Shown: positions 30,672 to 60,439 of the stretch, piece after piece
How positions within the stretch are numbered: position 1 is the first letter of the stretch
Layout: every line of letters begins with the position of its first letter
NCBI GenBank assembly: GCA_964187785.1
Contig: CAXLNC010001016.1
Span: forward strand, 1-64,000
Direction of reading: 5' to 3'
Source: Amphiscolops sp. MND2022
Lineage: Eukaryota
Length of the DNA: 64,000 nt
Notes under the pieces: generated by a model
Database searches by the model: none
Told to the model about the DNA's origin: nothing
The model's input: only the letters and a program-made list of their open reading frames with translations
Program-made: the position numbers and the translations under genes

Positions 30672-30687
30672 CTTGAGCCAAAATGGC
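30672..30687 (-). other. Relic dinoflagellate spliced-leader sequence (3' 16 nt)
   Basis: Minus strand reads GCCATTTTGGCTCAAG, identical to the last 16 nt of DinoSL (DCCGTAGCCATTTTGGCTCAAG). Chance expectation for a given 16-mer in 128 kb of both strands is about 3e-5 under equal base frequencies. Confidence 0.85.
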
Positions 30688-37130: not shown

Positions 37131-37874
37131 CCACAGAGACCCACAATGAAAAGGCCACAAGGGGTGTTGCCTGAGCTGCACGTTGTCTCTACTCGTGCAG
37201 GTCTCCGAAAACCAATAAAATTCGCACCAAAAATCCGTTACGCGACTCAGGAGGAAGCCTGACTGCAAAATAATAATAGAAAAGCACGGCAGCCAGAAGG
37301 TCAGCAAGCAGACTGACACCAGGAGCACCAACATGCATTTCACTAAGTTCAGCAACGATAGTCCTCACTGAGTCTTCAGCAACCCCAAGAAAAGAACCAC
37401 GACCAGACCCAGAATACCAGAGCCGATTTTTGGGCAGGGGATCCGACGAAGCACTTTTCAGTGAAGAAAAAGGGCTTTTCAGTGAAAAGGGGGGAGGGAT
37501 TCAGTGAAAGGGGGGTTTGGTAAGGATTTCTACAGGAAAGGCAATTCAGTGAAGAGGTCCGGGCCATTCAGTGAACCGCCGGACTCCGAAAATTGAAAAG
37601 TTGCTGTCCAAATCCACTTCCCAAAAATCAGCTCCTAGATTCAATACCAGGTCACCCCTGCGAACCGTTAACAACAATAAGAGTCCCTTCTGTCATTTAC
37701 TTGTCAGGAGCTGCGAAAGGTGCTGACGTTGAAGCAAAGGTGCAAAGCACACTGCAACAACCACCGCCACACAGAAGGTAAGGCATTATAACAGGAGCAA
37801 GTTGATACTTCCGCCCTCCGTTGTGTGTGGGCGCGCGTGTGCATACGACTCTCTCTCTCTCTCTACAGCATATA

Positions 37875-40800
37875 CGGGTGCGTAATTGAACCCCATTTTC
37901 GTCACTTCAAGAGAGCTTAATTGAACCCCGCCTTTTTGGAGCCTCGAAAACGCTACAAAATAGGGTTTCGGTCCCCCCCAGAAACTAAGCCAAATATGTC
38001 GAAAACACAATTTCTTTTTCTGTCCCTGGTTTATAGAGGTTTTCAGAAAAGTGCATTTTTCGACAATCCCGCTTTGTGAAGTCCCGAAAACACTATAAAA
38101 ATTGTGGTTTCGGAGACACGACGCCAAAAGAAGGAAAAGCGTGCAAATTCTAAAGGTCTCTGTGTGCTTCGACAAAGCGCGAGATTTTCGCACGGGGGGC
38201 GATGGGTCGGTTCACGGGATTTCTCCGCCCTATGCCTGAAACCACAGATTTTCTAGTGGTTTCGGGCACATACACTGGGATGGTTCTTCCTCATGTGCCT
38301 GAAAACACTAGTTTTATTGTGGTTTCAGGCACATGAGGAAGAACCAAGACAAACAAGAAGAAGACAAAGAAGAAGCAAAACAAGATAAATAAGCATACGC
38401 AAAACAAGAACAATAAGAGAAAGAAGAAAAAGGAGAAGAGGAAGAAGAAGAAAAAGGAGGAAAATAAGATGAAAAAGAAAAAAGAAGAAGAAGAAGAAAA
38501 AGAAGAAGAAGAAGAAAACGGAAAATAATAATAAGAAGAAGAAGAAGGAAAATGACAGAAAGACAAGAAGAAGAAGAAGACGAAGAAGAAGAAGAAGAAG
38601 AACAAGGAGAAGAAGAAGGAGGATAATAATAAGGAGGAGAAGGAGAAGGAGAACAACAATAATAATAATAATAATGATAATATGAAGTTGTCTGCCCTAT
38701 GCCTGAAACCACTATTTTTATAGTGGTTTCAGGCACACACATTGGGGTGGTGTCGGTTGTTTGGTTGTTGCTGTTTTTGTGGTTGTTTGTTTGTTTATTT
38801 GTTTGTTTGTTTGGGTGTTTGTTTGGGTGTTGTTGTTGTTGTTGTTGTTGTTGTGTTTTTGTTGTTCTTGTTTTTGNNNNNNNNNNNNNNNNNNNNNNNN
38901 NNNNNNNNNNNNNNNNNNNNNNNNNNNNNNNNNNNNNNNNNNNNNNNNNNNNNNNNNNNNNNNNNNNNNNNNNNNNNNNNNNNNNNNNNNNNNNNNNNNN
39001 NNNNNNNNNNNNNNNNNNNNNNNNNNNNNNNNNNNNNNNNNNNNNNNNAAGACACATAAGTAGAAGAAGAACAAAGGAAAACAAGAAGAAAAATAATATG
39101 AAGAAGAAAAAGAAAGAAAGGCAATGAAGAAGAAGAACAAGAAGGGGGTCAAGAACCAAAGGAAGAAGAAGAGAGCAACAACAACAGGACAAATATGAAG
39201 AAGACAAACCAGAAGAATAATAAGAAGACGAAGAAGAAAATAAAAAGAAGAAGAAGAAGAAGACCAAGAAGACTAAAAATAAGAAGAACAAGAAGCAGAA
39301 ACATAAACAGAAGAAGAAACATAGAATACGAAGAATAAACATAAAATGAAGAAGAAAACAATCAATATAAATACGCAGAAGAAAAAGAAGATGAAGAAGA
39401 AGAAGAAGAAGACAATAAGAAAAAATAAGAAGAAAAAGAAGAAGAATGAGAAGAGAAATGAGAAGAAGAGGAAGAAAAAAGAACAAAAATACAAAAAGGG
39501 GGGGCAAACCATGGGGGAAAACACACTTTCTCTGCCCTTCTCTCCTCCTTGTTCTTCCTCTCCTCGTTGTTCTTCTGCTGCTGTTGCTTCTTCTTCTTCT
39601 TCTTCTTCTTCTTCTTCGCCTTCTTCTTCTTCTTCTTCTTGGTCTTCTGATGGTTCTTCCTTTTCTTCTCTTCCTCATCTGCTTCTTCTTCTTCCTCTCC
39701 TTCTTCTTCTTTTGCTTATTTTTTCTAGTTCTTCACCTTGTTCTTCTTTTTCTAGTTCTTCTTCTTGCGTTCTTCTTCTTCTTCTTCTTCTTCTTTTTGT
39801 TTTTCCTTCTTGCTCTTCTCCTTCTTCTAAGAATCTCTTCTCCTCCTTCTTCGCTTCTTTCTTCTTCTTGTTCTTCTTGGGAACAGAAGACCCGAACACC
39901 CCCCCAAACAAAGGGGGCGTTTGCCCAAATATGTTGCAGCAAACGCAAAATAGTGGTTTCAGGCATAGTGTTTTCGTTGTTATTCTGTTGTTCTTGTTTT
40001 TGGTTGTTGTGGTTGTTGTTGTTGTTTGGTTGTTGTTGTTTTCTTCTTGTTTTGTTGTTTTGGTGGTTCTTGTTGTTTTGTTGTTTGTGCTGTTTCAGAA
40101 AAAAAACAAAACAGATAAGCAGAAGAAGAACAAAGTAAAACAAGACAAAGAAAAAGAAGATGAAAAAGAAGGAAAACTATTATGAGGAAGAAGAAGAAAA
40201 TAAAGGCAACTAAGAAGAATAAAAAAGGAGGTCAAGAACCAAAGGAAGAAGAAGAGAGCAACAACAAACGGACAACTATGAAGAAGACAAAGCAGAAAAA
40301 CAAGAAGAAGAAGACCAAGAAGAAGAAAAATACTAAGAATAAGAAACAGAAACAAAAACATTGAATAAGAAAAAGAAGAATATGATTAATAAGAAAATCA
40401 GTATAAATAAGCAGAAGAAAAACAAGATGAAGAAGAAGAAGAGGAAGAACATAAGAAAAAAAAGGAAGACAACGAAGGGAAATGAGAAGAGAAATGAGAA
40501 GAGAAATGAGAAGAGGAGGAAAAAGAACAAACAACACAAAAGGGGGGGGGCAAAACATGGGGGAAAACACACTTTTTCGCCCTTCTCTCCTCCTTGTTCT
40601 TCCTCTCCGCCTGGTTCTTCTGTTTCTTCTTCTTCTTCTTCTTCTTCTTTTTCTTCTTCTTCGCTTTCTTCTTCTTGGTCTTCTTCTGGTTCTTCTTTTT
40701 CTTCTCTTCCTCCTCTGCTTCTTCTTCTTCCTCTCCTTCCTCTTCTGCTTCTTCTTTGTCTAGCTCTTCTCTCCTTCTTCTTCTGTTCTTATTATCATCC

Positions 40801-41660
40801 TTGCGTTGTTGTTGTTCTTCTTCTTCTTCGAAGCCTCCTTCTTGTTATCTTCCTCCTTCTGACTACTCTCCTCCTGATTCTGATAATTCTTCTTCTTCTG
40901 GTTCTTCTGGTCCTTTTTCTTCTTTTCTAGTTTCTTTTTTTTCCCTTCTTCTGCTTCTTCTTCTTCTTCTTCTTCTTCTTGTTCTTCTTCTCTTTTGTTT
41001 TTTTTTTTGGGGGGGGGGGCTGGTGGTTGCTGTTGTTGGTGTTGCTCTTCTGGTTGTTTTTCTTGTTGTTTTGTTGTTTTGCTTGTGTGCAGCAAAAACA
41101 AAAACGAAAAAAAAAAAAAAAAAGAACAAATGACAACAACACGAAGAAACATACCTGTTTTTCTTCTTCCGGTTCTTCTTCTTTCTTATGTTGCTTCTCT
41201 CTTCCCTCTGTTCCTGCCTCTGCAAATTCTTTTCCAACGGTCCAGCCCAAAACGCAACACAAAAAAAGAAATGCGGGAAGAGAAGACACACAAACAACCC
41301 ACAGAGGAAAAATAAAACAACAAAAGATTTGAAACCCAGATGCCCCCACGTTTCGCACCAATTTCTCGCAGCAAACGCGTTTCTCCCCGTGTTTAGGCCC
41401 AAAAAAAAAAAAAAAAACGTCGCACTCCCCGTAGCTCGGGGCCATCCGGGAGCAAGAGCAGGGCAAAAAACCTGTTTTCCCCCGAGAAAAATGGAAAAAA
41501 GGCCAAAAATGAAGCCAAAATTCATGGGTGCTTAATTGAACTCCAAAAGTGGCAACCAAAATTGGGCCTTTGTTGATCAAAAAAATCATTTCCGCACTAC
41601 GTTTTCGCAGGTTTCGTGCAAATAGGGTAAAAAATGGGGTTCAATTAAGCACCCGGCAGC
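37875..41660. mobile_element. TA-flanked TIR element G (3.8 kb) with GAA/TTC/AAC low-complexity interior
   Basis: TIRs CGGGTGCGTAATTGAACCCCATTTT ... AAAATGGGGTTCAATTAAGCACCCG(GCAGC); right end followed by (AT)n; no coding capacity. Confidence 0.8.
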
Positions 41661-41679
41661 ATATATATATATATATATG

Positions 41680-42031
41680 GCTGTGGGGCCATTTGCCGCC
41701 GCAAATCTTGCCATTTTTATCGTTTTTTCCCCAGTTTTATAGCAAAAGCTGGTCAAAAAGAGATGTTGCAAATTTGCCCCGTCTCTGTTCGTTCCCGGTC
41801 AATCGAAATCAGCCAAAATTGGCTTGAGACTGCAGTCCCAAGCCTTTTTTTTCAAAAAAAATGATTGGGACTGCAGTCTCAGGCCTTTCTATTGGTTCAT
41901 GTTGGGTTTAAATGTTAAATTTGTTGGCCTTTTTGGCCCCAAAAGGCTTCAAGCTGCAGAAATGTTAAACATGTAAAACTTGACCTTTCCAAAAAAGGCT
42001 AAAAATTGTGGCGGCAAATGGCCCCACAGGC
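41680..42031. mobile_element. TA-flanked TIR element F (352 bp)
   Basis: TIRs (G)CTGTGGGGCCATTTGCCGCC ... GGCGGCAAATGGCCCCACAG(GC); (TA)n on both sides. Confidence 0.85.
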
Positions 42032-42085
42032 ATATATATATATATATATATGGCCTTATATATATATATATATATATATATAGAT

Positions 42086-42838
42086 GCTGTAGGGTTGATA
42101 ACTTGGCCATTTTTTGGCCAAAGTAGGGTCAATAACTTGGCCATGGTAGGGTGAATAACTTGGCCATCTTTTTTTGAGCCTACAAATATAGGGTTTTTTG
42201 GAGATTTTTTGGTGCACAGTTTTCAGGGGGTGGTGCAAAATTAGTGTTTTAGAAAAACAAATTTGGTCAAAAAAGGGGTTTCCGAAAAAAAATGTGCACC
42301 TTTTTTTGGGGAGTTTTGCTTTACTTCCTTGTTGCTGCATGATGGCACTAGATGCTTTAGAAGGGTGTGCAAAAAACCCTATAAAAATAGTTTTTTTTTT
42401 GTGCACCCTCTTGCTAGATGCAGAAGAAACAGAAAAAAGAAGAAAAAAAAAGTAACACCCAAAAAATGGGGGTTTCAGAATCCTCAAAAACCCTATTTTT
42501 ATAGCGTTTCCCGAAAAATGGGTGGTCGCCATTTTTTTTGAAAAAGGCTATGTTACAAGGAGGACACTTTTAGAAGGGCAAAAAAAAATGATAACTTTTT
42601 GGTGTCTTTTAGACAGAAATGTCTGAGAAGATGCCAAAACAAAAAAGGGGGGGGTTGGGGGGGGGGGGCGAAGCCCCCCCAGAAAGCAAGAGAGAAGCAG
42701 AGTCATGGCAGAGTTCTGGGTGTTTTTGTTGTTGTTTGTTGTTGTTTTTTTTTGTTTTTCTGGTTGTTGTTGTTGTGTCTATGTTTATTGGTTGTTGCTT
42801 CTTGTTGTTGTAGTTGTTTTGTTTTTGTTGTTGTTGTT

Positions 42839-42870
<32 letters not shown>

Positions 42871-44094
42871 CTCATTGTTGTTGTCATTCTTTTTGTTGTG
42901 GTCATTGTTGTTGTCATTGTTTTTGTTGTTGTTCTTGTTGTTGTTGTTTCCCCAGAACACCCCCCCCAAAAAAAAACTTCAAAAAACACGTGTTTTTTTT
43001 CCAGTGTTTTTTGCCTTATTTTCTTCTTCTCCCTCTGTTTCTTAGTCTTGATTTCTCTCTCTTTCTTTCCTTTTTTTATCCTTTTTCCCTCTCTTTCCTT
43101 CCTTTTCTTTCATTCCTTCTTTCCTTTCTTCCCTTTCTCTTTCTCTTCCTCTTTCTTCTTTCCTTCCTTTCTTTCTTTCTTTGCTTCTTATGTTCTTTCT
43201 TATTTTCTTCTTGTTGTCCTTGTTCTTCCATTTTTTGGTTTCATTGTTTTGCTTGTTGCTCCTATGACTCTTGTTTTTGTTGTTCTTATGTTGTTTTTTT
43301 TTTGTTTTTGTTGATTTTGGTGTTTTTTGTTCTTGTTGTTGTGTGTTGTGTTGTTAAGATAGGCATAGCCTAAAAAAACAGAAACCAAAAAAAACACCCC
43401 CCCCCCCAAAAAAAAAGTGGAAGTACTGTCTCCCCGAGAAAGATTACCCGCCCGAAATTTATTTTCTGAATTAATTAGAAATTGCCCTTACCCGCCGTTA
43501 CCCGAAATTAATTTTCAGAATTAATTGTCGAAGAAATTACCCGGAAATGCCCCTACCAAATGCGTGGGCTCTTACCCGAATTGCCCGAAATCGGCTTCGC
43601 AAATTAATTAAAGATTACCCTTACCTGGGGTTACCCGGAATAAATGTTTTGAATTAATTGGGTAATGTTTGTCGGGAGGAGAGTACTTCCGGGTATTTTT
43701 TACAAGACAAGTTATGGTTGCATGTGCCAAAGTTATTGCTTTTTTTTGGCTGTTTTGTTGTTTTTTGCCTTGCTGCTCAAAAGCACTACAAAAATAGGGA
43801 TTTTTGATGATTTTGAGATGTTGAGTTTTAGCATTTTTGGTCAACAAAGTAGGGTCAATAACTTGGCCATGGTAGGGTCAATAACTTGGCCGTCTTTTTG
43901 GCCAAAATTTTGCCCAGAAAGATGGCCAAGTTATTGACCCTACAGTTTTCACGATTTTTTTTGGTTAAAACTCCTTTTTTCCAAAAAATCTCATTCTCCC
44001 TGCAGAAAGAAGAAGTATTTAAAAAACAAAAAAAAACAAAAACAAAGATGGCCAAGTTATTGACTTATGATGGCCAAGCTATTGACCCTACAGC
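42086..44094. mobile_element. TA-flanked TIR element A (2.0 kb)
   Basis: TIRs GCTGTAGGGTTGATAACTTGGCCA ... TGGCCAAGCTATTGACCCTACAGC; subterminal GGTCAATAACTTGGCC repeats; TA-rich flanks. Confidence 0.9.
43428..43681. mobile_element. 254-bp insertion inside element A
   Basis: Flanked by AGTACT at 43422-43427 and 43682-43687; element B shows the empty site with one AGTACT (54013-54018); interior built of ATTACCCG/GGGTAAT motifs. Confidence 0.85.
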
Positions 44095-52639: not shown

Positions 52640-53360
52640 AGCGTTGGATTGCTCACCCTTCAGTCCTGGACAAAAATACAAAACAATGGGGGAGGTTTCC
52701 CCGTAACAAAAAGCATACTTTTAAAAATGAACAAAGCCCGGGTTCACATCGTGGAGAAGGGACATTTGTTTAAAACCCGGCTTTTGTTCTTTTTGTTGGT
52801 TTTGTTCCCCTACAAAAATAGGATAAATTTGAAAAAGTGCTCGAAACCCGGGTTTTGTTCATTTTGTTGATCTTAGGTGTTACGTAAAAATGCGTAAAGC
52901 CCGGATTTTGTTCATTTTGTTCATTCCTGTGGGGAGATTTCCCCTTAAAAAAGGCTAATTTTTAAAGAGGTGCTCAAACCCGGCTTTGTTCATTTTATGG
53001 GGAAGGGAAAAATGAACAACACTTGTTCATTTTGTTCATTTTTTGGGGAACCTTTGAGGGTCTTATTAGACATCCCTCAAAAGGTTCCCCGAAAAGAATA
53101 ACAAAATTAACAAAATTAACAAAACCCGGGTGTTGTTCATTGTTGCGTCAAACCTAAGATCAACAAAATGAACAAAATGATCAAAACCCAGGTTTCGAGC
53201 ACTTTTTGAACTCTATCCTTTTTTTTAAGGAGGAAATCTCCCCCCCCGAGAATGAACAAAATGAACAAAATGGACAAAACCCGGGTTTTGTTCATTTCTC
53301 GCAAGGTAGAAGGAACAAAATGAGCAAAATGAACAAAACCCGGGTTTTGTGGACATTAAT
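52640..53360. repeat. Two adjacent fold-back blocks of AATGAACAAA/TTTGTTCATT and AAACCCGG motifs
   Basis: Motif copies in both orientations. Confidence 0.75.
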
Positions 53361-53611
53361 TTGTTTATAGTAACGCTGTCAAGGATTCTCTTATGAGGAA
53401 TTTATACTAATTCTGTGAAATGGTATCTTATGATGATTTTTTTACCAGAATCAGATCTGGATTGAGAAATTGTCAGGGGGCAAAACTTTGGCCCAATATT
53501 GGCCCAACTGTTTTGTGCCCCAAAATGCGTGTTTCTGCAGTCCCAGTGTGATTTTTGATATCTTCTGGCGGAAAAAAGGTGAGGGCCATGTATATATATA
53601 TATGTATATAT

Positions 53612-55560
53612 GCTGTAGGGTCAATAACTTGGCCACCATAAGTCAATAACTTGGCCACCTTTTTTATTATTTTTTGTTGTTTTGTTTGTTTTTCAAAAAT
53701 ATTCTTCTTTCTGCAGGGAGAATGAGATAAAAAACAGTTTTAGCAAAAAAGCACGTGAAAACTGTAGGGTCAATAACTTGGCCACATTTTCCAATTTTTT
53801 TGCAAAGAATGTAGCCAAGTTATTGACCCTACCGTGGCCAAGTTATTGACCTACAATTTTGACCCAAAAAACTAAAAATCAACATCTCAAATCATCAAAA
53901 AACCTATTTTTATAGTGTTTTTTGAGCAGCAAGGAAAAAACAACAAAACGGCCAAAAAAAACAATAACTTTGGCACATGCAACCATAACTTGTGTTGTAA
54001 GAAATACCCGGAAGTACTTCCACTTTTTTGTTTTTTTTTGTTTCTGTTTTTTGGCTATGCCTAACTTAACAACATAACAACACAAAAACACAACAACAAG
54101 GACAAAAAACACAAAAATCAACAAAACCAAAAATCAGCTTAAGAACAACAAAAACAAGAATTAGAGTTACAACAACAAAGACAATGGCACAAACAAAATG
54201 GAAGAAGAACAACAACAAGAAGAAAAGAGAAAGAAAAGAAGAAACAAAGGAAGAAAGAAAGGAAGGAAAGAAGAAAGAGGAAAATAAAGAGAAAGGCAAG
54301 AAAGGAAAGAAGGAATGAAAGAGANNNNNNNNNNNNNNNNNNNNNNNNNNNNNNNNNNNNNNNNNNNNNNNNNNNNNNNNNNNNNNNNNNNNNNNNNNNN
54401 NNNNNNNNNNNNNNNNNNNNNNNNNNNNNNNNNNNNNNNNNNNNNNNNNNNNNNNNNNNNNNNNNNNNNNNNNNNNNNNNNNNNNNNNNNNNNNNNNNNN
54501 NNNNNNNNNNNNNNNNNNNNNNNNNNNNNNNNNNNNNNNNNNNNNNNNNNNNNNNNNNNNNNNNNNNNNNNNNNNNNNNNNNNNNNNNNNNNNNNNNNNN
54601 NNNNAAAACACGTGTTTGTTTGATGTTTTTTTTCTTNNNNNNNNNNNNNNNNNNNNNNNNNNNNNNNNNNNNNNNNNNNNNNNNNNNNNNNNNNNNNNNN
54701 NNNNNNNNNNNNNNNNNNNNNNNNNNNNNNNNNNNNNNNNNNNNNNNNNNNNNNNNNNNNNNNNNNNNNNNNNNNNNAGCAACAACAAAAAACACAAAGA
54801 TACAACAACAACAACCAGAACAAAAAAAAACAACAAAGAACAACAAAAACAACAAGAACTCTGCCATGACTGTGCTTCTCTCTTCCTTTTTGGGGGGGGG
54901 GGGCTTCGCCCCCCCCCCCAACCCCCCCCTGTTTTTTGGTTTGGCATCTTCTCAGGCATTTCTGTCTAAAAGGCACCAAAAAGTTATCATTTTTTCCCCT
55001 CTAAGTCTGTCCTCTTTGTAACATAGCCTTTTTGAAAAAAATGGTTGCCACCCAATTTTTCGGGAAACGCTACAAAAGTAGGGGTTTTTGAGGATTTTGA
55101 AAAACCCGATTTTTTGGAAAAAATGGTGGAACTACTTCCTGCCCGTTTTCAAGCCCCCCCCAAAAATGGGTATTACTTTTTTTTTGGCCTTTTTTTTTTC
55201 TTCTTTTTCTGTTTCTTCTGCATCTAGCAAGAGGGTGCTCAAAAAAAACCTATTTTTATAGGGTTTTTTGCACACCCTTCGAAAGCATCTAGTGACATCA
55301 TGCAGCAACAAGGAAGTAAAGCCTAAACTCCCCCCAAAAAAGGTGCACAATTTTTTTTTCGGAAACCTCTTTTTTTGACCAACAACAACTTTCAAAAACA
55401 CTAATTTTGCACCACCCCCCTGAAAACTGTGCACCAAAAAATCTCCAAAAACCCCTATTTTTATAGGCTCAAAAAAAGGTGGCCAAGTTATTGACCCTAC
55501 CGTGGCCAAGTTATTGACCTTAAAATGGCCAAAACGTGGCCCAGTTATTGACCCTACAGC
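53612..55560. mobile_element. TA-flanked TIR element B, inverted copy of element A
   Basis: Same GCTGTAGGGTCAATAAC...GTTATTGACCCTACAGC ends; interior is the reverse complement of A (e.g. 54940-54980 vs 42600-42640). Confidence 0.9.
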
Positions 55561-55582
55561 ATATATACATATATATATATGT

Positions 55583-57252
55583 GCTGTGAAGTTATTATCT
55601 GGGCCAAGTTTGGCCATTTCAGGTGTTATTATCTGGGCCAAGTAGGTGTTATTATCTGGGCCAAGCTGTTTCTAGCCTATTTTTATAGTGGTTTCAGGCT
55701 TTTTTTGACACACTCAGTTATCATTTTGTGTTTTTTTTTGGTGCCCAATTATCTGCTAATTCTCTTAAATAGCCTTTTGCAAAAAAAGGGTGCACAATTT
55801 GGGTTTTTCAATTTCTCTGCTTTAAGTTAACTTTAAAAATCTCTTTTTTAGGTTTGCTATAACACTATAAAAATCGGGGTTTCGGCAGATTTTTGTGTGC
55901 GTTTTTGTTGTTGACAGAGAAGAAAAGAGCCCCCCAAAATGATAACTGGAATTTCTGGATTTGGTTTTTTTGTCCAAAAATGGCCGTTTCGTGACGCATA
56001 ACTGTTTTTCAAAAATTTGTTCTCGGAATCCCCAAATTTTATAGTGTTTTGGAGGTGCGCGCTTTCTGGGCCAAGATGTCAAAAAAAGGCAATTTTTGGA
56101 CATCCCCCCTGAAAAAGAAAAATTGGCTGATAACTGAAAAGTTCATTGTTTGGTAGTTTCTGGTTTGTCTTGTTTTTTTTTCTTTTTTTCTTTTCTTTGG
56201 TTTTTTTGTTTTTTTGTTGATTTTTTTTTTTGGAGGGTTTACGGGTCAGGTGAGATGGCCCGAAGGGCCACCTCACTTGGCCCTAGACCCTCCTTATTTT
56301 TTTTTGTTTTAAGTTATTTTTGGTGGGTGTAAGGGTCAGGTGAGGTGGCCCAAAGGGCCACCTCACTTGGCCCCAAGCCCTCGTTATTTTGTGTTTTTTT
56401 TTTTGTTTTTTTTTCGTGTCTTTGCTTTGAATAGAAAAATGTTTTCCCCCCTAACAAGGGCATTTTTGCATATTTTTGAGTGTCGCCCTTTGTTTCTCCT
56501 TACCCTTTTTTGACCTCCCCCTTTTTCACTTCCTCTTTCTCTGTCTCTCTCTTGTTTTTTTTTTTCTTCCTTCCTTCTTGTCTTTCTTTGTTCGCTTTCT
56601 TTTGGTTCCTTTTTGTCTCTTTCTTTTCCTTCTTCTTTGCTTTCGTGTCATGAAAAGAACAACATGAAACTATTAAACTTTAAAGTTTTTTATTCCGTTT
56701 TTTTTGGGGGGGTTTCCTGTCTTGTTTTTCTTTCAAATCCCTTTTTCTTGTCTTTGCTTTTTCTGATTTTAGTTTGTGTTTTTTGTTCAACATCAATGTT
56801 TTTGCTTTCAAAAAAGACAAGTAAAAAAAACAAAAAAACACCAATTTTTGAAAAAGGGGTTGCAACAAAACGTTTTTTTTATGAACCCCTGTTTTGCAAA
56901 ATGTGAAAAGTTATCGTTTTGTGGCCCCTTTTGCCAAATTTTGGTTGATGTTACAAAAGACTCTGAAAATAGGTATCTCAGCACATTTTTACTGGCAAAA
57001 AAAATGCCATTTTGAGGTGTTATTATCTGGGCCAAGTGGGTGTTATTGTCTGGGCCAAGTTTGGCGCAACTTAAAAATGGCCAACTTGGCCCAGATAATA
57101 ACACCTCAAATTTATGCACGCAATTTTCAAACAAACAAAATGTGCTGAACCCCTATTTTATAGTGTCTTGTGACAAACATTGTTTTGGAGAAAATAAACT
57201 TGGCCCAGATAATCACACCTCAAAAGGGCAAATTTGGCACAGATAATAACAC
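55583..57252. mobile_element. TA-flanked TIR element C (1.7 kb)
   Basis: Starts GCTGTGAAGTTATTATCTGGGCCAAG; motif TTATTATCTGGGCCAAG repeated at both ends in both orientations; right end GGCACAGATAATAACAC then (TA)n. Confidence 0.8.
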
Positions 57253-57328
57253 ATATATAAATAGATAGATAGGTAGATAGATATATATGTATATGTATAT
57301 GTATAGGAATATATATATATATATATAT

Positions 57329-58887
57329 GCTGGAGAGTTGTTAGTTTGTCCACTTTTTGGAGAGTTATTCGTTTGGCCACCTCGAAAGTTGTTAGTTTGT
57401 CCATCTCTTTGGGGGCATTTTCGCACTACAAAAAGAGTTTGTTTTGAAGATGTTTGTTTCGAACGTTGGTCACAATTAGTGTTTTTGTGTTTTCTGTTCA
57501 CTATTTTTCTGCGGGAGTTGGCGTTTTTGAAAATGCCCGTTTTTGTGCCCGTTTTTGGGTTTGCACGAATTGTGCAAAAAGGGTGCACACTGTTTGTTTC
57601 ACAACTTAAAAACAGAACAAAAAAACTCTGAAACCACTATTTCTCAGCAAGAATCTGGTTTTTGTTGCAAAGCGACAAAAACTGATTTTGCTTCTGGGTG
57701 GTCAAAACAAAAAACACTAATTGGGCACATGGGTGTTCTTGGATCCGAAGAATGGTTTTGTTTTAAAAACAAAATGATGATGTTTAAAAAATCTGCAGGT
57801 TTGTGAGGTTTTTACTCTTGATTTTGTAACCCTTTCCCCCAGACTTTTGGTTTTCTCTGTCTATTTTTCTTATGTTTTGTTCTTGTTTTACTTGTTCTTG
57901 TTGTTGTTTGAAAGGCTCGTTTGTGTGTTCTGGTTGTTGTTTCCTTTTTTGGTTCTTGGTTCTTCGGGCCACCTCACTTGGCCCTAAAACCCTCCTTATT
58001 ATTTCTTTGGTTTGTTTTATATGTTTCTTCTGTTTTTGGGAAGGGCTTAAAGGTCAGGTGAGGTGGCCCGAGGGCCACCTCACTTGGCCCTAAACCTCAT
58101 TATTATTTGTTTAATTTTTGGGGGTACATTTTTGGGGTTTTGTTTTTCTTTCTTTTCTTCATAAGACAAAATCCTTGCTTCATCCCCTAAAAACCATTTT
58201 TGTTTGTTTGCTGAGCGTCTGCCTTGCTTTGTCCTCAGCCTTTTTTCAGGACCCCTGTTTGTTATTTTCTGTCTTTTTGGTTTTCTTATGTTTTTTAGGT
58301 TTTTGGGGTTTTCTTCCTTTCTTTCTTTGTTTTTATTTGTTTCTCTTTCATTGTTTATTTATCTTTTTTTTCCTTTTTTTGGTTTGTTTTTTTTTTGTGT
58401 TTTGGTTGTTCTTTCTTGTTTGTTGGTACAATGCTAACATAAGATAGTAAATTATGAGAAGATAAAAACATAATATGGAAGCATGAGCCAAAAAAGGAAC
58501 AAAAATAACAAATACAACAACATAACATGTTTCTTTATAAATACGACGTTCGAATTGAAGAAAGTTATTAGTTTGTCCACCGATGTGTCAACCTGGCTTT
58601 TAATAAAGGTTCTACTTTTTCAAAAATGCCCCAATGAGACCCAAATATTGGAAGACATAGAGCCTTTTGAAAGTGATGAGTTTGGCCACCTCGAAAATTG
58701 GTAGTTTGTCCACTTTTGGGGGTCAAAAATCGACCCCAAAAGCGGACAGATAATAACTCTCCGCAGTGGCCAAACTAATAATTTTCATTTTGCTTCTGGC
58801 TGCTGTGAGAATGATGTCTTCAAAAAAGTGGCCAAACGAATAACTTACGGAAAGGCCAAAAAGTGGGCAAACTAAAAACTCTCCGGC
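57329..58887. mobile_element. TA-flanked TIR element D (1.56 kb)
   Basis: TIRs GCTGGAGAGTTGTTAGTTTGTCCACTTTTTGG ... CCAAAAAGTGGGCAAACTAAAAACTCTCCGGC; (TA)n on both sides. Confidence 0.85.
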
Positions 58888-58911
58888 ATATGTATATATA
58901 TATATATATCT

Positions 58912-59860
58912 GCTGTAGAGTTAAAAGTTGGTCCAATATTTGGGGGTTTATGTGTTTTCGCAAAATTGTCGGGCTGTCAAACGTGAGGTTTTCGAAAGGA
59001 AAATTGCATTTGGTTTGTCTTTTTTATGTTGCTGAAAGAGAAACAGAAAAATTGGAAAAGGCCCCAAAGCCCTAGAAAAATAGTGATCATCCAAAAATTA
59101 GAAAAATGAAAAATATGGATTTTAGCAGAAACTGCCGGACGCTATTTGTGTCGGGAAGTGAGAAAAAAACGCGCATTTTCGTGCACACTATCTGTTTTGG
59201 CCAAGATTCTTTTGGGGTCCAAGACAGTCCAGACCAGGAATAAACTATAAAATAGTGGTTTCAACGGAAGCTGCCTAAAACCCAAAAAGACATTTTTTTG
59301 AAAAAGGTGTTTTTTGGGGTGGGTGTAAAAGTGGTTCTTACTAACTGTCTTTTTGAAAAGCTGTGTTCTCCTGATAACATTATTTTTAGTGTTTTCAGCA
59401 AAGCACAGCAATTGCAGTAAACAGATGTGTGTTGAAAACACAGAAAATATATGAAAAATTGTAGGTTGGGTTTGAACATGGCAAAAATATGTTTTTAGTT
59501 TGTTTTTTGAGGTTTTAATGGTTTTGTGGCAGGTAAAGTTGCAGAAGTGTTAAAAATGCCTGTTTTTTCTTCCCATTTGGGGGGCCTTTTCGGGGGTGGT
59601 TTATTCTTGTTTTCTTTGCGTTTGGAAGGTTTAGGTGTTGTGTTTCTTGCTTTTGTTTTCTTTGGTTTAGGTTTTTTTTGTTTATTTTTGTTTTGTTCTT
59701 TTTTGGTGTTGTTCTTGTTTATGTTTTTGGGGGTTGTTCTATTTTTACTTTTATTTTTTATTTTTGTTTGTTCTTGTTTGTTTTGTTTGTTTGTGTTGGA
59801 GTGTATTTGTTGTTTTTGTGTTTTCATGTTGTGTTTTTCGGTTGCTTTTGTTTGGTTCTT
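58912..59860. mobile_element. TA-flanked element E, right end not found
   Basis: (TA)n then GCTGTAGAGTTAAAAGTTGGTCCA; interior resembles the other stacked elements; no matching right TIR seen. Confidence 0.6.
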
Positions 59861-60439
59861 GTCAATGAACCTCCTCCCTCCGGTCCATTGGGGTCGTGGT
59901 TCCAGAAACATGCAGGCATGTCAGTTAGATTCAGGTTCAGGTGAGGACCTACCTGTCTCGTCTCATGTGTGCATGTGCACTGTTTTTGGTGACCCATCAC
60001 TGACTTGATGGATGGACGTCCCACAAGCCTTAAAGGCTCAAGGGAGTAGTAGCTGTAGCAAGATAGAAGTTGCATCACCAGCGGTACCAGTAGCACATAG
60101 CCTGAGTCATCAGCTGCCAGATGCCAGCAAGCGAGTGCGATTGAGAAGAAAGCAGGTATCAATCGATCAGCTCTGTTGCACCATTCCCACTAAGGGACAA
60201 CATGGTGGAGCAGAGCGGTAGAATACCACGGGACGCACTGGGGATGGACTTGCCAGTGGGGCATTACGCAAGGAGTGACGCTCCACCCCCGTCATCGTCC
60301 TGTGAAAAGACGAGTCCGCTCTAAAGCAAGCAGTGCGTCAGCCTCTGGAAGGGAAAGGGCACCTATGCCTCAGCTACCCCAGTGGCGAGCCCTGCAACAA
60401 GAATCTCAGGATGCCTCATTGAGCGAAGGTTCGATTCCA

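Follow-up and report, generated by a model that had tools for sequence, protein, structure and literature searches.

What sets several families of inverted-repeat elements end to end, with nothing but TA-rich spacers between them, is the question raised by positions 53591-59862 of a 64,000-nucleotide (nt) stretch of DNA, positions 1 to 64,000 of contig CAXLNC010001016.1 from the assembly of Amphiscolops sp. MND2022 (GCA_964187785.1); this whole stretch is referred to below as the window. The train of elements found there is probably made up of non-autonomous cut-and-paste DNA transposons of a single clan, most likely carried by a dinoflagellate that was assembled with its animal host, and built by insertions with an 8-nt stagger.

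The left edge of the train was a TA-rich tract of 21 nt (53591-53611) that exactly mirrored the opening 20 nt of the spacer between the first two elements. Element B (copy 1, 53612-55560) measured 1949 nt including two runs of N and ended in GCTGTAGGG...CCCTACAGC. Its terminal inverted repeat (TIR) was GCTGTAGGGTCAATAACTTGGCC, and the same 20-nt motif was repeated near both ends. A TA-rich spacer of 22 nt (55561-55582) led to element C (55583-57252; 1670 nt), which began with GCTGTGAAG at an intact left terminus and was short of the final 6-8 nt on the right. Two copies of a 62-nt module, a near-perfect hairpin, lay in its T-rich core with a period of 90 nt (56232-56383; copies at 56232-56293 and 56322-56383). 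A spacer of 76 nt rich in TA and GATA (57253-57328) was followed by element D (57329-58887; 1559 nt; ends GCTGGAGAG...CTCTCCGGC), in every copy of which a GCTG end and a GCCG end could be told apart, and then by a TA-rich spacer of 24 nt (58888-58911). Element E (58912 to about 59862), beginning with GCTGTAGAG, was a half copy with one terminus. It aligned to positions 2129-1056, the right-hand 1.07 kilobases (kb), of the full 2.1-kb copy L032 5814-7942, and the homology ended at about 59862 inside the T-rich core, where G+C-rich unique DNA abutted. The preliminary description of this DNA had reported four TIR elements joined by (TA)n spacers only, and this layout was confirmed, with E present as a half copy.

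A train on a small unplaced scaffold such as this one could be artificial if the assembly had collapsed sequence, or joined it chimerically, at TA tracts and gaps; the contigs concerned are small, and the window contains four runs of N, two of them inside B. Such an artefact is scarcely credible here, as the same type of junction was found on dozens of independent contigs, TIR pairs were complete and regularly spaced at 1.5-2.2 kb, and B was collinear with gap-free copies. Two gap-free B copies served as the reference (window 42086-44094 and L024 3016-4789). The sequences on either side of the N runs in B copy 1 were collinear with these copies in a single orientation at 84-90% identity, and B copy 1 was therefore taken as one element across its gaps. 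The interval spanning the gaps was 456-467 nt in B copy 1, of which 421 were N, compared with 296-307 nt in the gap-free copies, so the gap sizes in B may be overestimated.

The elements of the train belonged to one clan. A 40-nt consensus was common to 45 aligned termini from the window and other contigs, namely: GCTG-(T/G)(A/G)(G/A)AGT(T/C)A(T/A)TA-n(C/T)T(G/T)Gn-CCA-nnTTT(T/G)GGCC. Four positions were invariant (G1, G9, T10 and C22). When the terminus pattern GCTGNRRRGTYAWTANYTGGNCC (GCTG-YRRAGTTAWTA-nYTGGnCC) was searched against the whole assembly with at most one mismatch, 164 matches were obtained, compared with one match for the reversed pattern used as the control. Element sizes were 1.5-2.2 kb, the exceptions being elements F (0.35 kb) and G (3.8 kb). 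Each element had an inverted repeat of about 40 nt starting with GCTG and more copies of the 20-nt motif near both ends. The inverted-repeat arms were 45 nt at 98% complementarity in B, 53 nt at 89% in C, and 52 nt at 92% in D; all three carried extra copies of their own 20-nt terminal motif near both ends, and one end of each contained an internal inverted pair of that motif.

Similarity extended beyond the termini. At least 40 near full-length relatives of C were present in the assembly (71-83% identity, all 1.6-1.8 kb), and seven copies could be aligned over their full length at 75-95%. Core sequences in C, D, E, and two other families shared modules that matched at 78-88%; one of these, the 62-nt hairpin module, with a predicted fold of -23.1 kcal/mol (z = -6.3), was common to C, D, E and other families. 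The shared terminal bases, subterminal repeats and cores claimed in the preliminary description were borne out. None of the copies examined contained an open reading frame (ORF) with a transposase domain, which together with paired ends 1.5-2.2 kb apart identifies the elements as non-autonomous, again as had been proposed. A Helitron or retroelement was rejected on account of the clear 40-nt TIRs.

The 62-nt module (GGAGGGTTTAAGGGTCAGGTGAGGTGGCCC / GGGCCACCTCACTTGGCCCTAAACCCTCC) occurred in one to three copies per T-rich core in several families; sites beyond C included about 58043-58096 in the window and L026 4030-4190. Short palindromes of the form GAAACC-ACTATAAAAATAGT-GGTTTC were dispersed through all elements.

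Element ends were closely tied to TA tracts. All eight (TA)n runs with n of at least 4 in the window lay at element ends. An alternating A/T flank was present at 45 of 45 aligned termini, and at each of positions -10 to -1 the alternation held in 78-93% of them. Genome-wide, ATATAT occurred at positions -8 to -3 beside at least 95 of the 164 termini (at most one mismatch overall), compared with 0 in the control, and a perfect ATATAT was found at 30 of the 49 perfect terminus matches. Most copies were thus flanked by TA, both among the aligned termini and across the assembly, as the preliminary description had required of a group that homes to (TA)n.

A larger sample of 264 kb consisted of the window and of contigs fetched because they hold such elements. 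About 28 of its 35 merged TA tracts touched an element end (21 flagged by script and seven by eye), a share that is biased upwards outside the window by this choice of contigs and to that extent tells against the case made here, only the window figure being unbiased. Seven TA tracts in the sample, 11-29 nt long, were free of any element. At about a quarter of ends, the GCTG terminus was separated from the TA tract by a short insertion of GC, GT or GCAT (e.g., L018 7036-7037, L020 5774-5781, and window 55581-55582). These inserts may be footprints of earlier excisions, or may come from slippage involving the terminal GC.

The association could also have arisen in the reverse order. Elements may insert at a short TA-rich site, with long tracts arising later through duplication, stutter of the gap-repair polymerase and slippage, so that most TA microsatellites are by-products of insertion. 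We regard this as a real possibility, if somewhat short of an even chance. About 80% of the sampled TA tracts, and all of those in the window, were attached to element ends, and some flanks beside unique DNA were only 8-9 nt long. A model in which the TA tract follows insertion has been put forward for maize TAFT elements, and maize empty sites of 6-8 bp are described in the same account (PMC5907723, citing Wang and Dooner 2006) as expanding once an element has inserted. On the other side, the seven element-free tracts indicate that free targets occur, and spacers within trains were no longer than the tracts at train edges.

The manner of insertion was recorded in the phase of the flanks. Both element ends met the TA tract in the same phase (top strand ...ATAT|GCTG...CAGC|ATAT...), and position -1 was T at 42 of 45 ends, counting both sides. 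Odd-length target duplications (3, 5, 7, and 9 nt) are excluded because they would set the two ends in opposite phase; a 9-nt duplication of the Mutator type was rejected by this argument.

Duplication length was examined in 16 complete copies: the k bases that end the left flank were compared with the k bases that open the right flank, and the outcome was set against shuffled pairings. Exact matches were found in 69% of real pairs and 70% of shuffled pairs at k = 2 nt, 50% and 40% at 4 nt, 31% and 30% at 6 nt, 44% and 19% at 8 nt, 19% and 17% at 10 nt, and 19% and 14% at 12 nt. An exact 8-nt direct repeat was present in seven of the 16 complete copies (permutation p = 0.004), and three of the seven repeats were irregular 8-mers (p = 0.0007). 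Exact repeats of 6, 10, and 12 nt were not in excess among these 16 copies. The repeat ATATAGAT flanked B copy 2 and a D copy on contig C765, while ACATATAT flanked an E copy on contig C145, where the left flank consisted of exactly those 8 nt, with unique DNA beyond them. Among spacers separating two elements, the shortest, ATATATAT, was exactly 8 nt long. These results point to a target duplication of 8 nt, (AT)4, which would be hAT-like and would regenerate targets on both sides of an insertion. The preliminary description had each insertion regenerating its own targets; the duplication provides a basis for that claim, while the order of events within it is something we infer.

A Tc1/mariner-type transposon with a single TA dinucleotide as its target, true ends of TGCTG...CAGCA and a strong taste for TA runs would also yield a fixed phase, which agrees with a TA duplication of 2 nt provided that the T and A beside GCTG and CAGC are counted as element ends. 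This origin is very improbable. The excess of exact repeats over shuffled pairs was found at 8 nt and not at 2 nt, the AC beside one end of L032 5814-7942 breaks a 2-nt duplication and fits the 8-nt ACATATAT, and CAGT-type ends were not present.

The trains did not recur as one fixed unit. B copy 1 lay between unique DNA and C, B copy 2 between F and unique DNA, and the B element on contig C1333 between two inverted copies of another family. D lay between C and E in the window, was alone with unique flanks on contig C1603, and adjoined other families on contigs C765, C1140, C1293, and C1126. Single insertions between unique flanks were found on C1603 (7038-9077) and C1585 (6181-7960), and further arrays on C1140, C1333, C145, C284, C902, and C972. 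No GCTG element interrupted another in the 300 kb that were read. Since neighbors and order varied by locus, with B in different company at three loci and D solitary at one, a fixed composite repeat, which the preliminary description had named as the outcome that would speak against it, was rejected.

Runs of two to four C-family copies in one orientation were observed at C284:15626-22394, C902:14833-18382, and C1763:8623-12124, and several of these copies were joined by spacers of exactly 12 nt. These runs could be serial insertions or tandem duplications between TA tracts. Such one-family, one-orientation runs, in part with a uniform 12-nt spacer and comprising four copies on C284, two on C902, and two to three on C1763, are in keeping with trains that owe most of their growth to unequal crossing-over or to slippage of replication between TA tracts, in the manner of satellite amplification. 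As the main source of trains such growth is decidedly unlikely: the two trains of the window differ in families, order, and orientation; neighboring copies on C1140 lie in opposite orientation; some copies stand alone between unique flanks and carry 8-nt duplications; and the copies on C284 are 73-77% identical to the query and hence not fresh duplicates.

If the trains were built by staggered insertion, the repeated 20-nt motifs would be putative binding sites of a transposase supplied in trans. This transposase would cut its target with an 8-nt stagger at ATATATAT, and every insertion would leave (AT)4 or more on both sides. The (AT)4 flanks would be fresh targets beside a resident element, with the result that later insertions would line up in non-nested trains. 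The tracts would then be lengthened and homogenized by replication slippage and excision repair and, more speculatively, hairpin opening in the self-complementary TA tract would add further TA. Excision by hAT, Mutator-like, and Transib enzymes produces hairpins on the DNA that flanks the element. Transposition in these three groups is described as resembling one another and V(D)J recombination in the account of PMC5499845.

A hAT-type enzyme is the best fit to the features read from the DNA, namely: an 8-nt duplication, a target compatible with nTnnnnAn, and subterminal repeats. Hermes, a hAT transposon, uses nTnnnnAn targets, produces 8-bp duplications, and needs subterminal repeats that extend well beyond the TIR (PMC10368747). 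The flank phase observed here gives ATATATAT, with T at position 2 and A at position 7, at 42 of 45 ends, and ATATATAT agrees with nTnnnnAn only in this phase. ATATAGAT also fits the motif, and ACATATAT fits at position 7 only. The elements resemble hAT transposons (Hermes, Ac/Ds, and Tol2) in the 8-bp duplication, in having two dissimilar ends that carry short subterminal repeats required by the transposase, and in the occurrence of gene-less derivatives, which are 0.4-2 kb in hAT (PMC10368747).

Several observations weigh against insertion of hAT-like elements with an 8-nt stagger. The ends of hAT elements are usually (C/T)A(A/G)NG and their TIRs short, whereas the ends here begin G-C/T-T/C-G and the inverted repeat is about 40 nt long; to our knowledge no hAT family homes to microsatellites or forms such trains. 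Nine of the 16 complete copies were without an 8-nt repeat, and many had GC, GT or GCAT just outside the terminus. L006 1502-3266 had on one side only ATATA followed by unique DNA, and the flanks of B copy 1 were mirror images over 20 nt, including one interruption, and not direct repeats. Copies were 71-95% identical, from which it follows that most insertions are old and that their flanks have had time to change. Plant elements likewise often show flanks that are inconsistent with simple duplication (PMC5907723).

Neither a transposase nor a long copy was found. Among the terminus matches listed, no pair of termini was more than 2.2 kb apart, and the 30 long ORFs of the window and fetched contigs contained no transposase domain; a long TIR copy encoding a transposase, which the preliminary description had suggested looking for, was therefore absent from both sets. 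Pfam profile searches covered the whole assembly and returned the best 150 matches each. Nearly all of the 150 matches listed for PF13358 (DDE_3) were on host scaffolds C1-C13 and none was linked to a GCTG element; the matches listed for PF05699 (hAT dimerization) were almost all host copies on C1-C13. Rfam gave nothing in the window, one long ORF had no match in a protein atlas, and viral contigs gave no terminus match. One JGI metagenome match, which had no TA flank and nothing conserved beyond the 24-nt pattern, was taken as chance.

No empty or polymorphic site was seen either: all-against-all comparison of 300 kb gave no paralogous flank, and the flanks of two single insertions were unique in the assembly. 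As a consequence, movement itself, and whether the tract or the element came first, are matters that we infer. The homing to (TA)n put forward in the preliminary description is supported by the TA flanks, though its assumption that the tract preceded the element goes beyond what they show.

The closest parallels were found in plants. SaTar elements of guayule, rice, sorghum, and citrus are non-autonomous TIR elements of 0.4-1.9 kb that are mostly flanked by (TA)n and, like the elements here, form linear arrays of mixed families in which no element interrupts another (PMC5907723). SaTar elements are Mutator-like, have autonomous Mutator-like element (MULE) partners with similar TIRs, and produce duplications of 10 bp (guayule) or 9 bp (rice) at non-microsatellite sites, as opposed to 8 nt here (PMC5907723). 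The present elements are set apart from SaTar by GCTG ends, by longer bodies that can be aligned between families, and by a host that is probably a dinoflagellate and not a plant. MuTAnT (Medicago truncatula), Micron (rice), and TAFT (maize), as portrayed in PMC4486113 and in Akagi et al. 2001 and Wang and Dooner 2006 (both as cited in PMC5907723), share with the present elements a strong association with TA microsatellites and a variable loss of the outermost TIR bases, and their TA tracts are described there as longer at filled than at empty sites. MuTAnT differs in having 9-nt duplications and an autonomous copy with a mudrA-like transposase, and in consisting mostly of foldback copies 200-300 bp long (PMC4486113).

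True kinship with SaTar, MuTAnT, TAFT, and Micron, with a MuDR-type transposase as the mobilizing enzyme, would account for the common architecture: TIR elements at (TA)n, mixed non-nested arrays, eroded terminal bases, and inconsistent flanks (PMC5907723, PMC4486113). We nevertheless consider it unlikely that the elements are Mutator-like. Since the two ends meet the tract in identical phase, a 9-nt duplication like that of MuTAnT and most rice MULEs is excluded, and a 10-nt repeat as in guayule was without excess and failed in all three informative copies. No link was found between these contigs and a MuDR-type gene. The 150 matches listed for PF10551 (MULE) were host copies, almost all of them on host chromosomes C1-C13.

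The DNA that carries the elements is probably that of a dinoflagellate assembled together with the animal host, although this is not proven. Besides 13 chromosome-scale scaffolds, the assembly of 1.07 Gb contains many small contigs, and the window belongs to the latter. About 96% of element matches were on small contigs. Three copies of the 21-nt dinoflagellate spliced leader were present in the assembly, all on small contigs, compared with 0 for the control. The last 15 nt of the spliced leader matched exactly at window 30672-30686 (minus strand), and the full 21-mer did not occur in the window at up to two mismatches.

The chromosome-scale host scaffolds held almost none of the 164 terminus matches, apart from TA-flanked GCTG elements at C4:64451900-64455451 and C2:18458703-18460944. 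Either mis-scaffolding of symbiont DNA or its transfer to the host could account for them. In practical terms, the 40-nt terminus with its TA flank marks symbiont-derived contigs in the host assembly, and the same marker flags these two possibly mis-scaffolded places on chromosome-scale scaffolds.

The array architecture itself is already known from plants, in SaTar, MuTAnT, TAFT, and Micron, all of them Mutator-like (PMC5907723, PMC4486113). New here are the host lineage, a GCTG clan whose non-coding bodies are conserved, and evidence of a duplication of 8 nt. Microsatellite-targeted elements go unmentioned in a 2024 review of dinoflagellate genomics (PMC11453091), as do elements of the MITE type (miniature inverted-repeat transposable elements), and no report of such elements was found in the literature on dinoflagellates. 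Arrays of unrelated transposons that target microsatellites have so far been reported only for Mutator-like plant elements. An independent case in an alveolate, with another duplication length, would if true mean that the strategy of using microsatellites as safe landing sites, renewed by each insertion, evolved more than once. It would also explain the source of most TA microsatellites in this genome. A bolder version, which we hold to be doubtful, is that an undescribed lineage of dinoflagellate transposons both makes and uses TA microsatellites, (AT)4 duplications and hairpin-type excision repair creating most tracts, which in turn seed the trains, and that the conserved hairpin-bearing bodies of 1.5-2.2 kb are functional and not junk.

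A second train occupied window positions 37876-44094. Element G (37876-41660; 3.8 kb, including one N run) had a right end of ...CACCCGGCAGC and a left end that lacked 6 nt. Element F (41680-42031) was MITE-sized at 351 nt, lay between TA tracts, and had ends of G(G/C)CTGTGGGGCC...GGCCCCACAGGC; a second copy of F (90% identity) adjoined a D element on another contig. F and G had only the outermost bases and the TA flanks in common with the rest of the clan. B copy 2 (42086-44094) was inverted relative to copy 1 and was flanked by the exact 8-nt direct repeat ATATAGAT.

B copy 2 also contained a 256-nt MITE of another type (43428-43683), which was absent from the other two B copies. Its TIR was roughly (G/C)TCTCC-CCGA-AAA-ATTACCC, with repeated TTACCCG motifs, and it was flanked by a 4-nt direct repeat, TACT (43424-43427 and 43684-43687). 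The GCTG elements are thus open to interruption by other transposons. At the left edge of the second train (37863-37875), a 7-nt CTACAGC followed a (CT)n run and preceded ATATAC and the left end of G with its 6-nt erosion. This CTACAGC matches the last bases of B/E-type ends and could represent either a solo end or the footprint of an excision. To the left of the first train (52700-53360), a module of about 25 nt (AATGAACAAAATGAACAAAACCCGGGTT) was present in many copies in both orientations, and this repeat looks like another foldback-type element.

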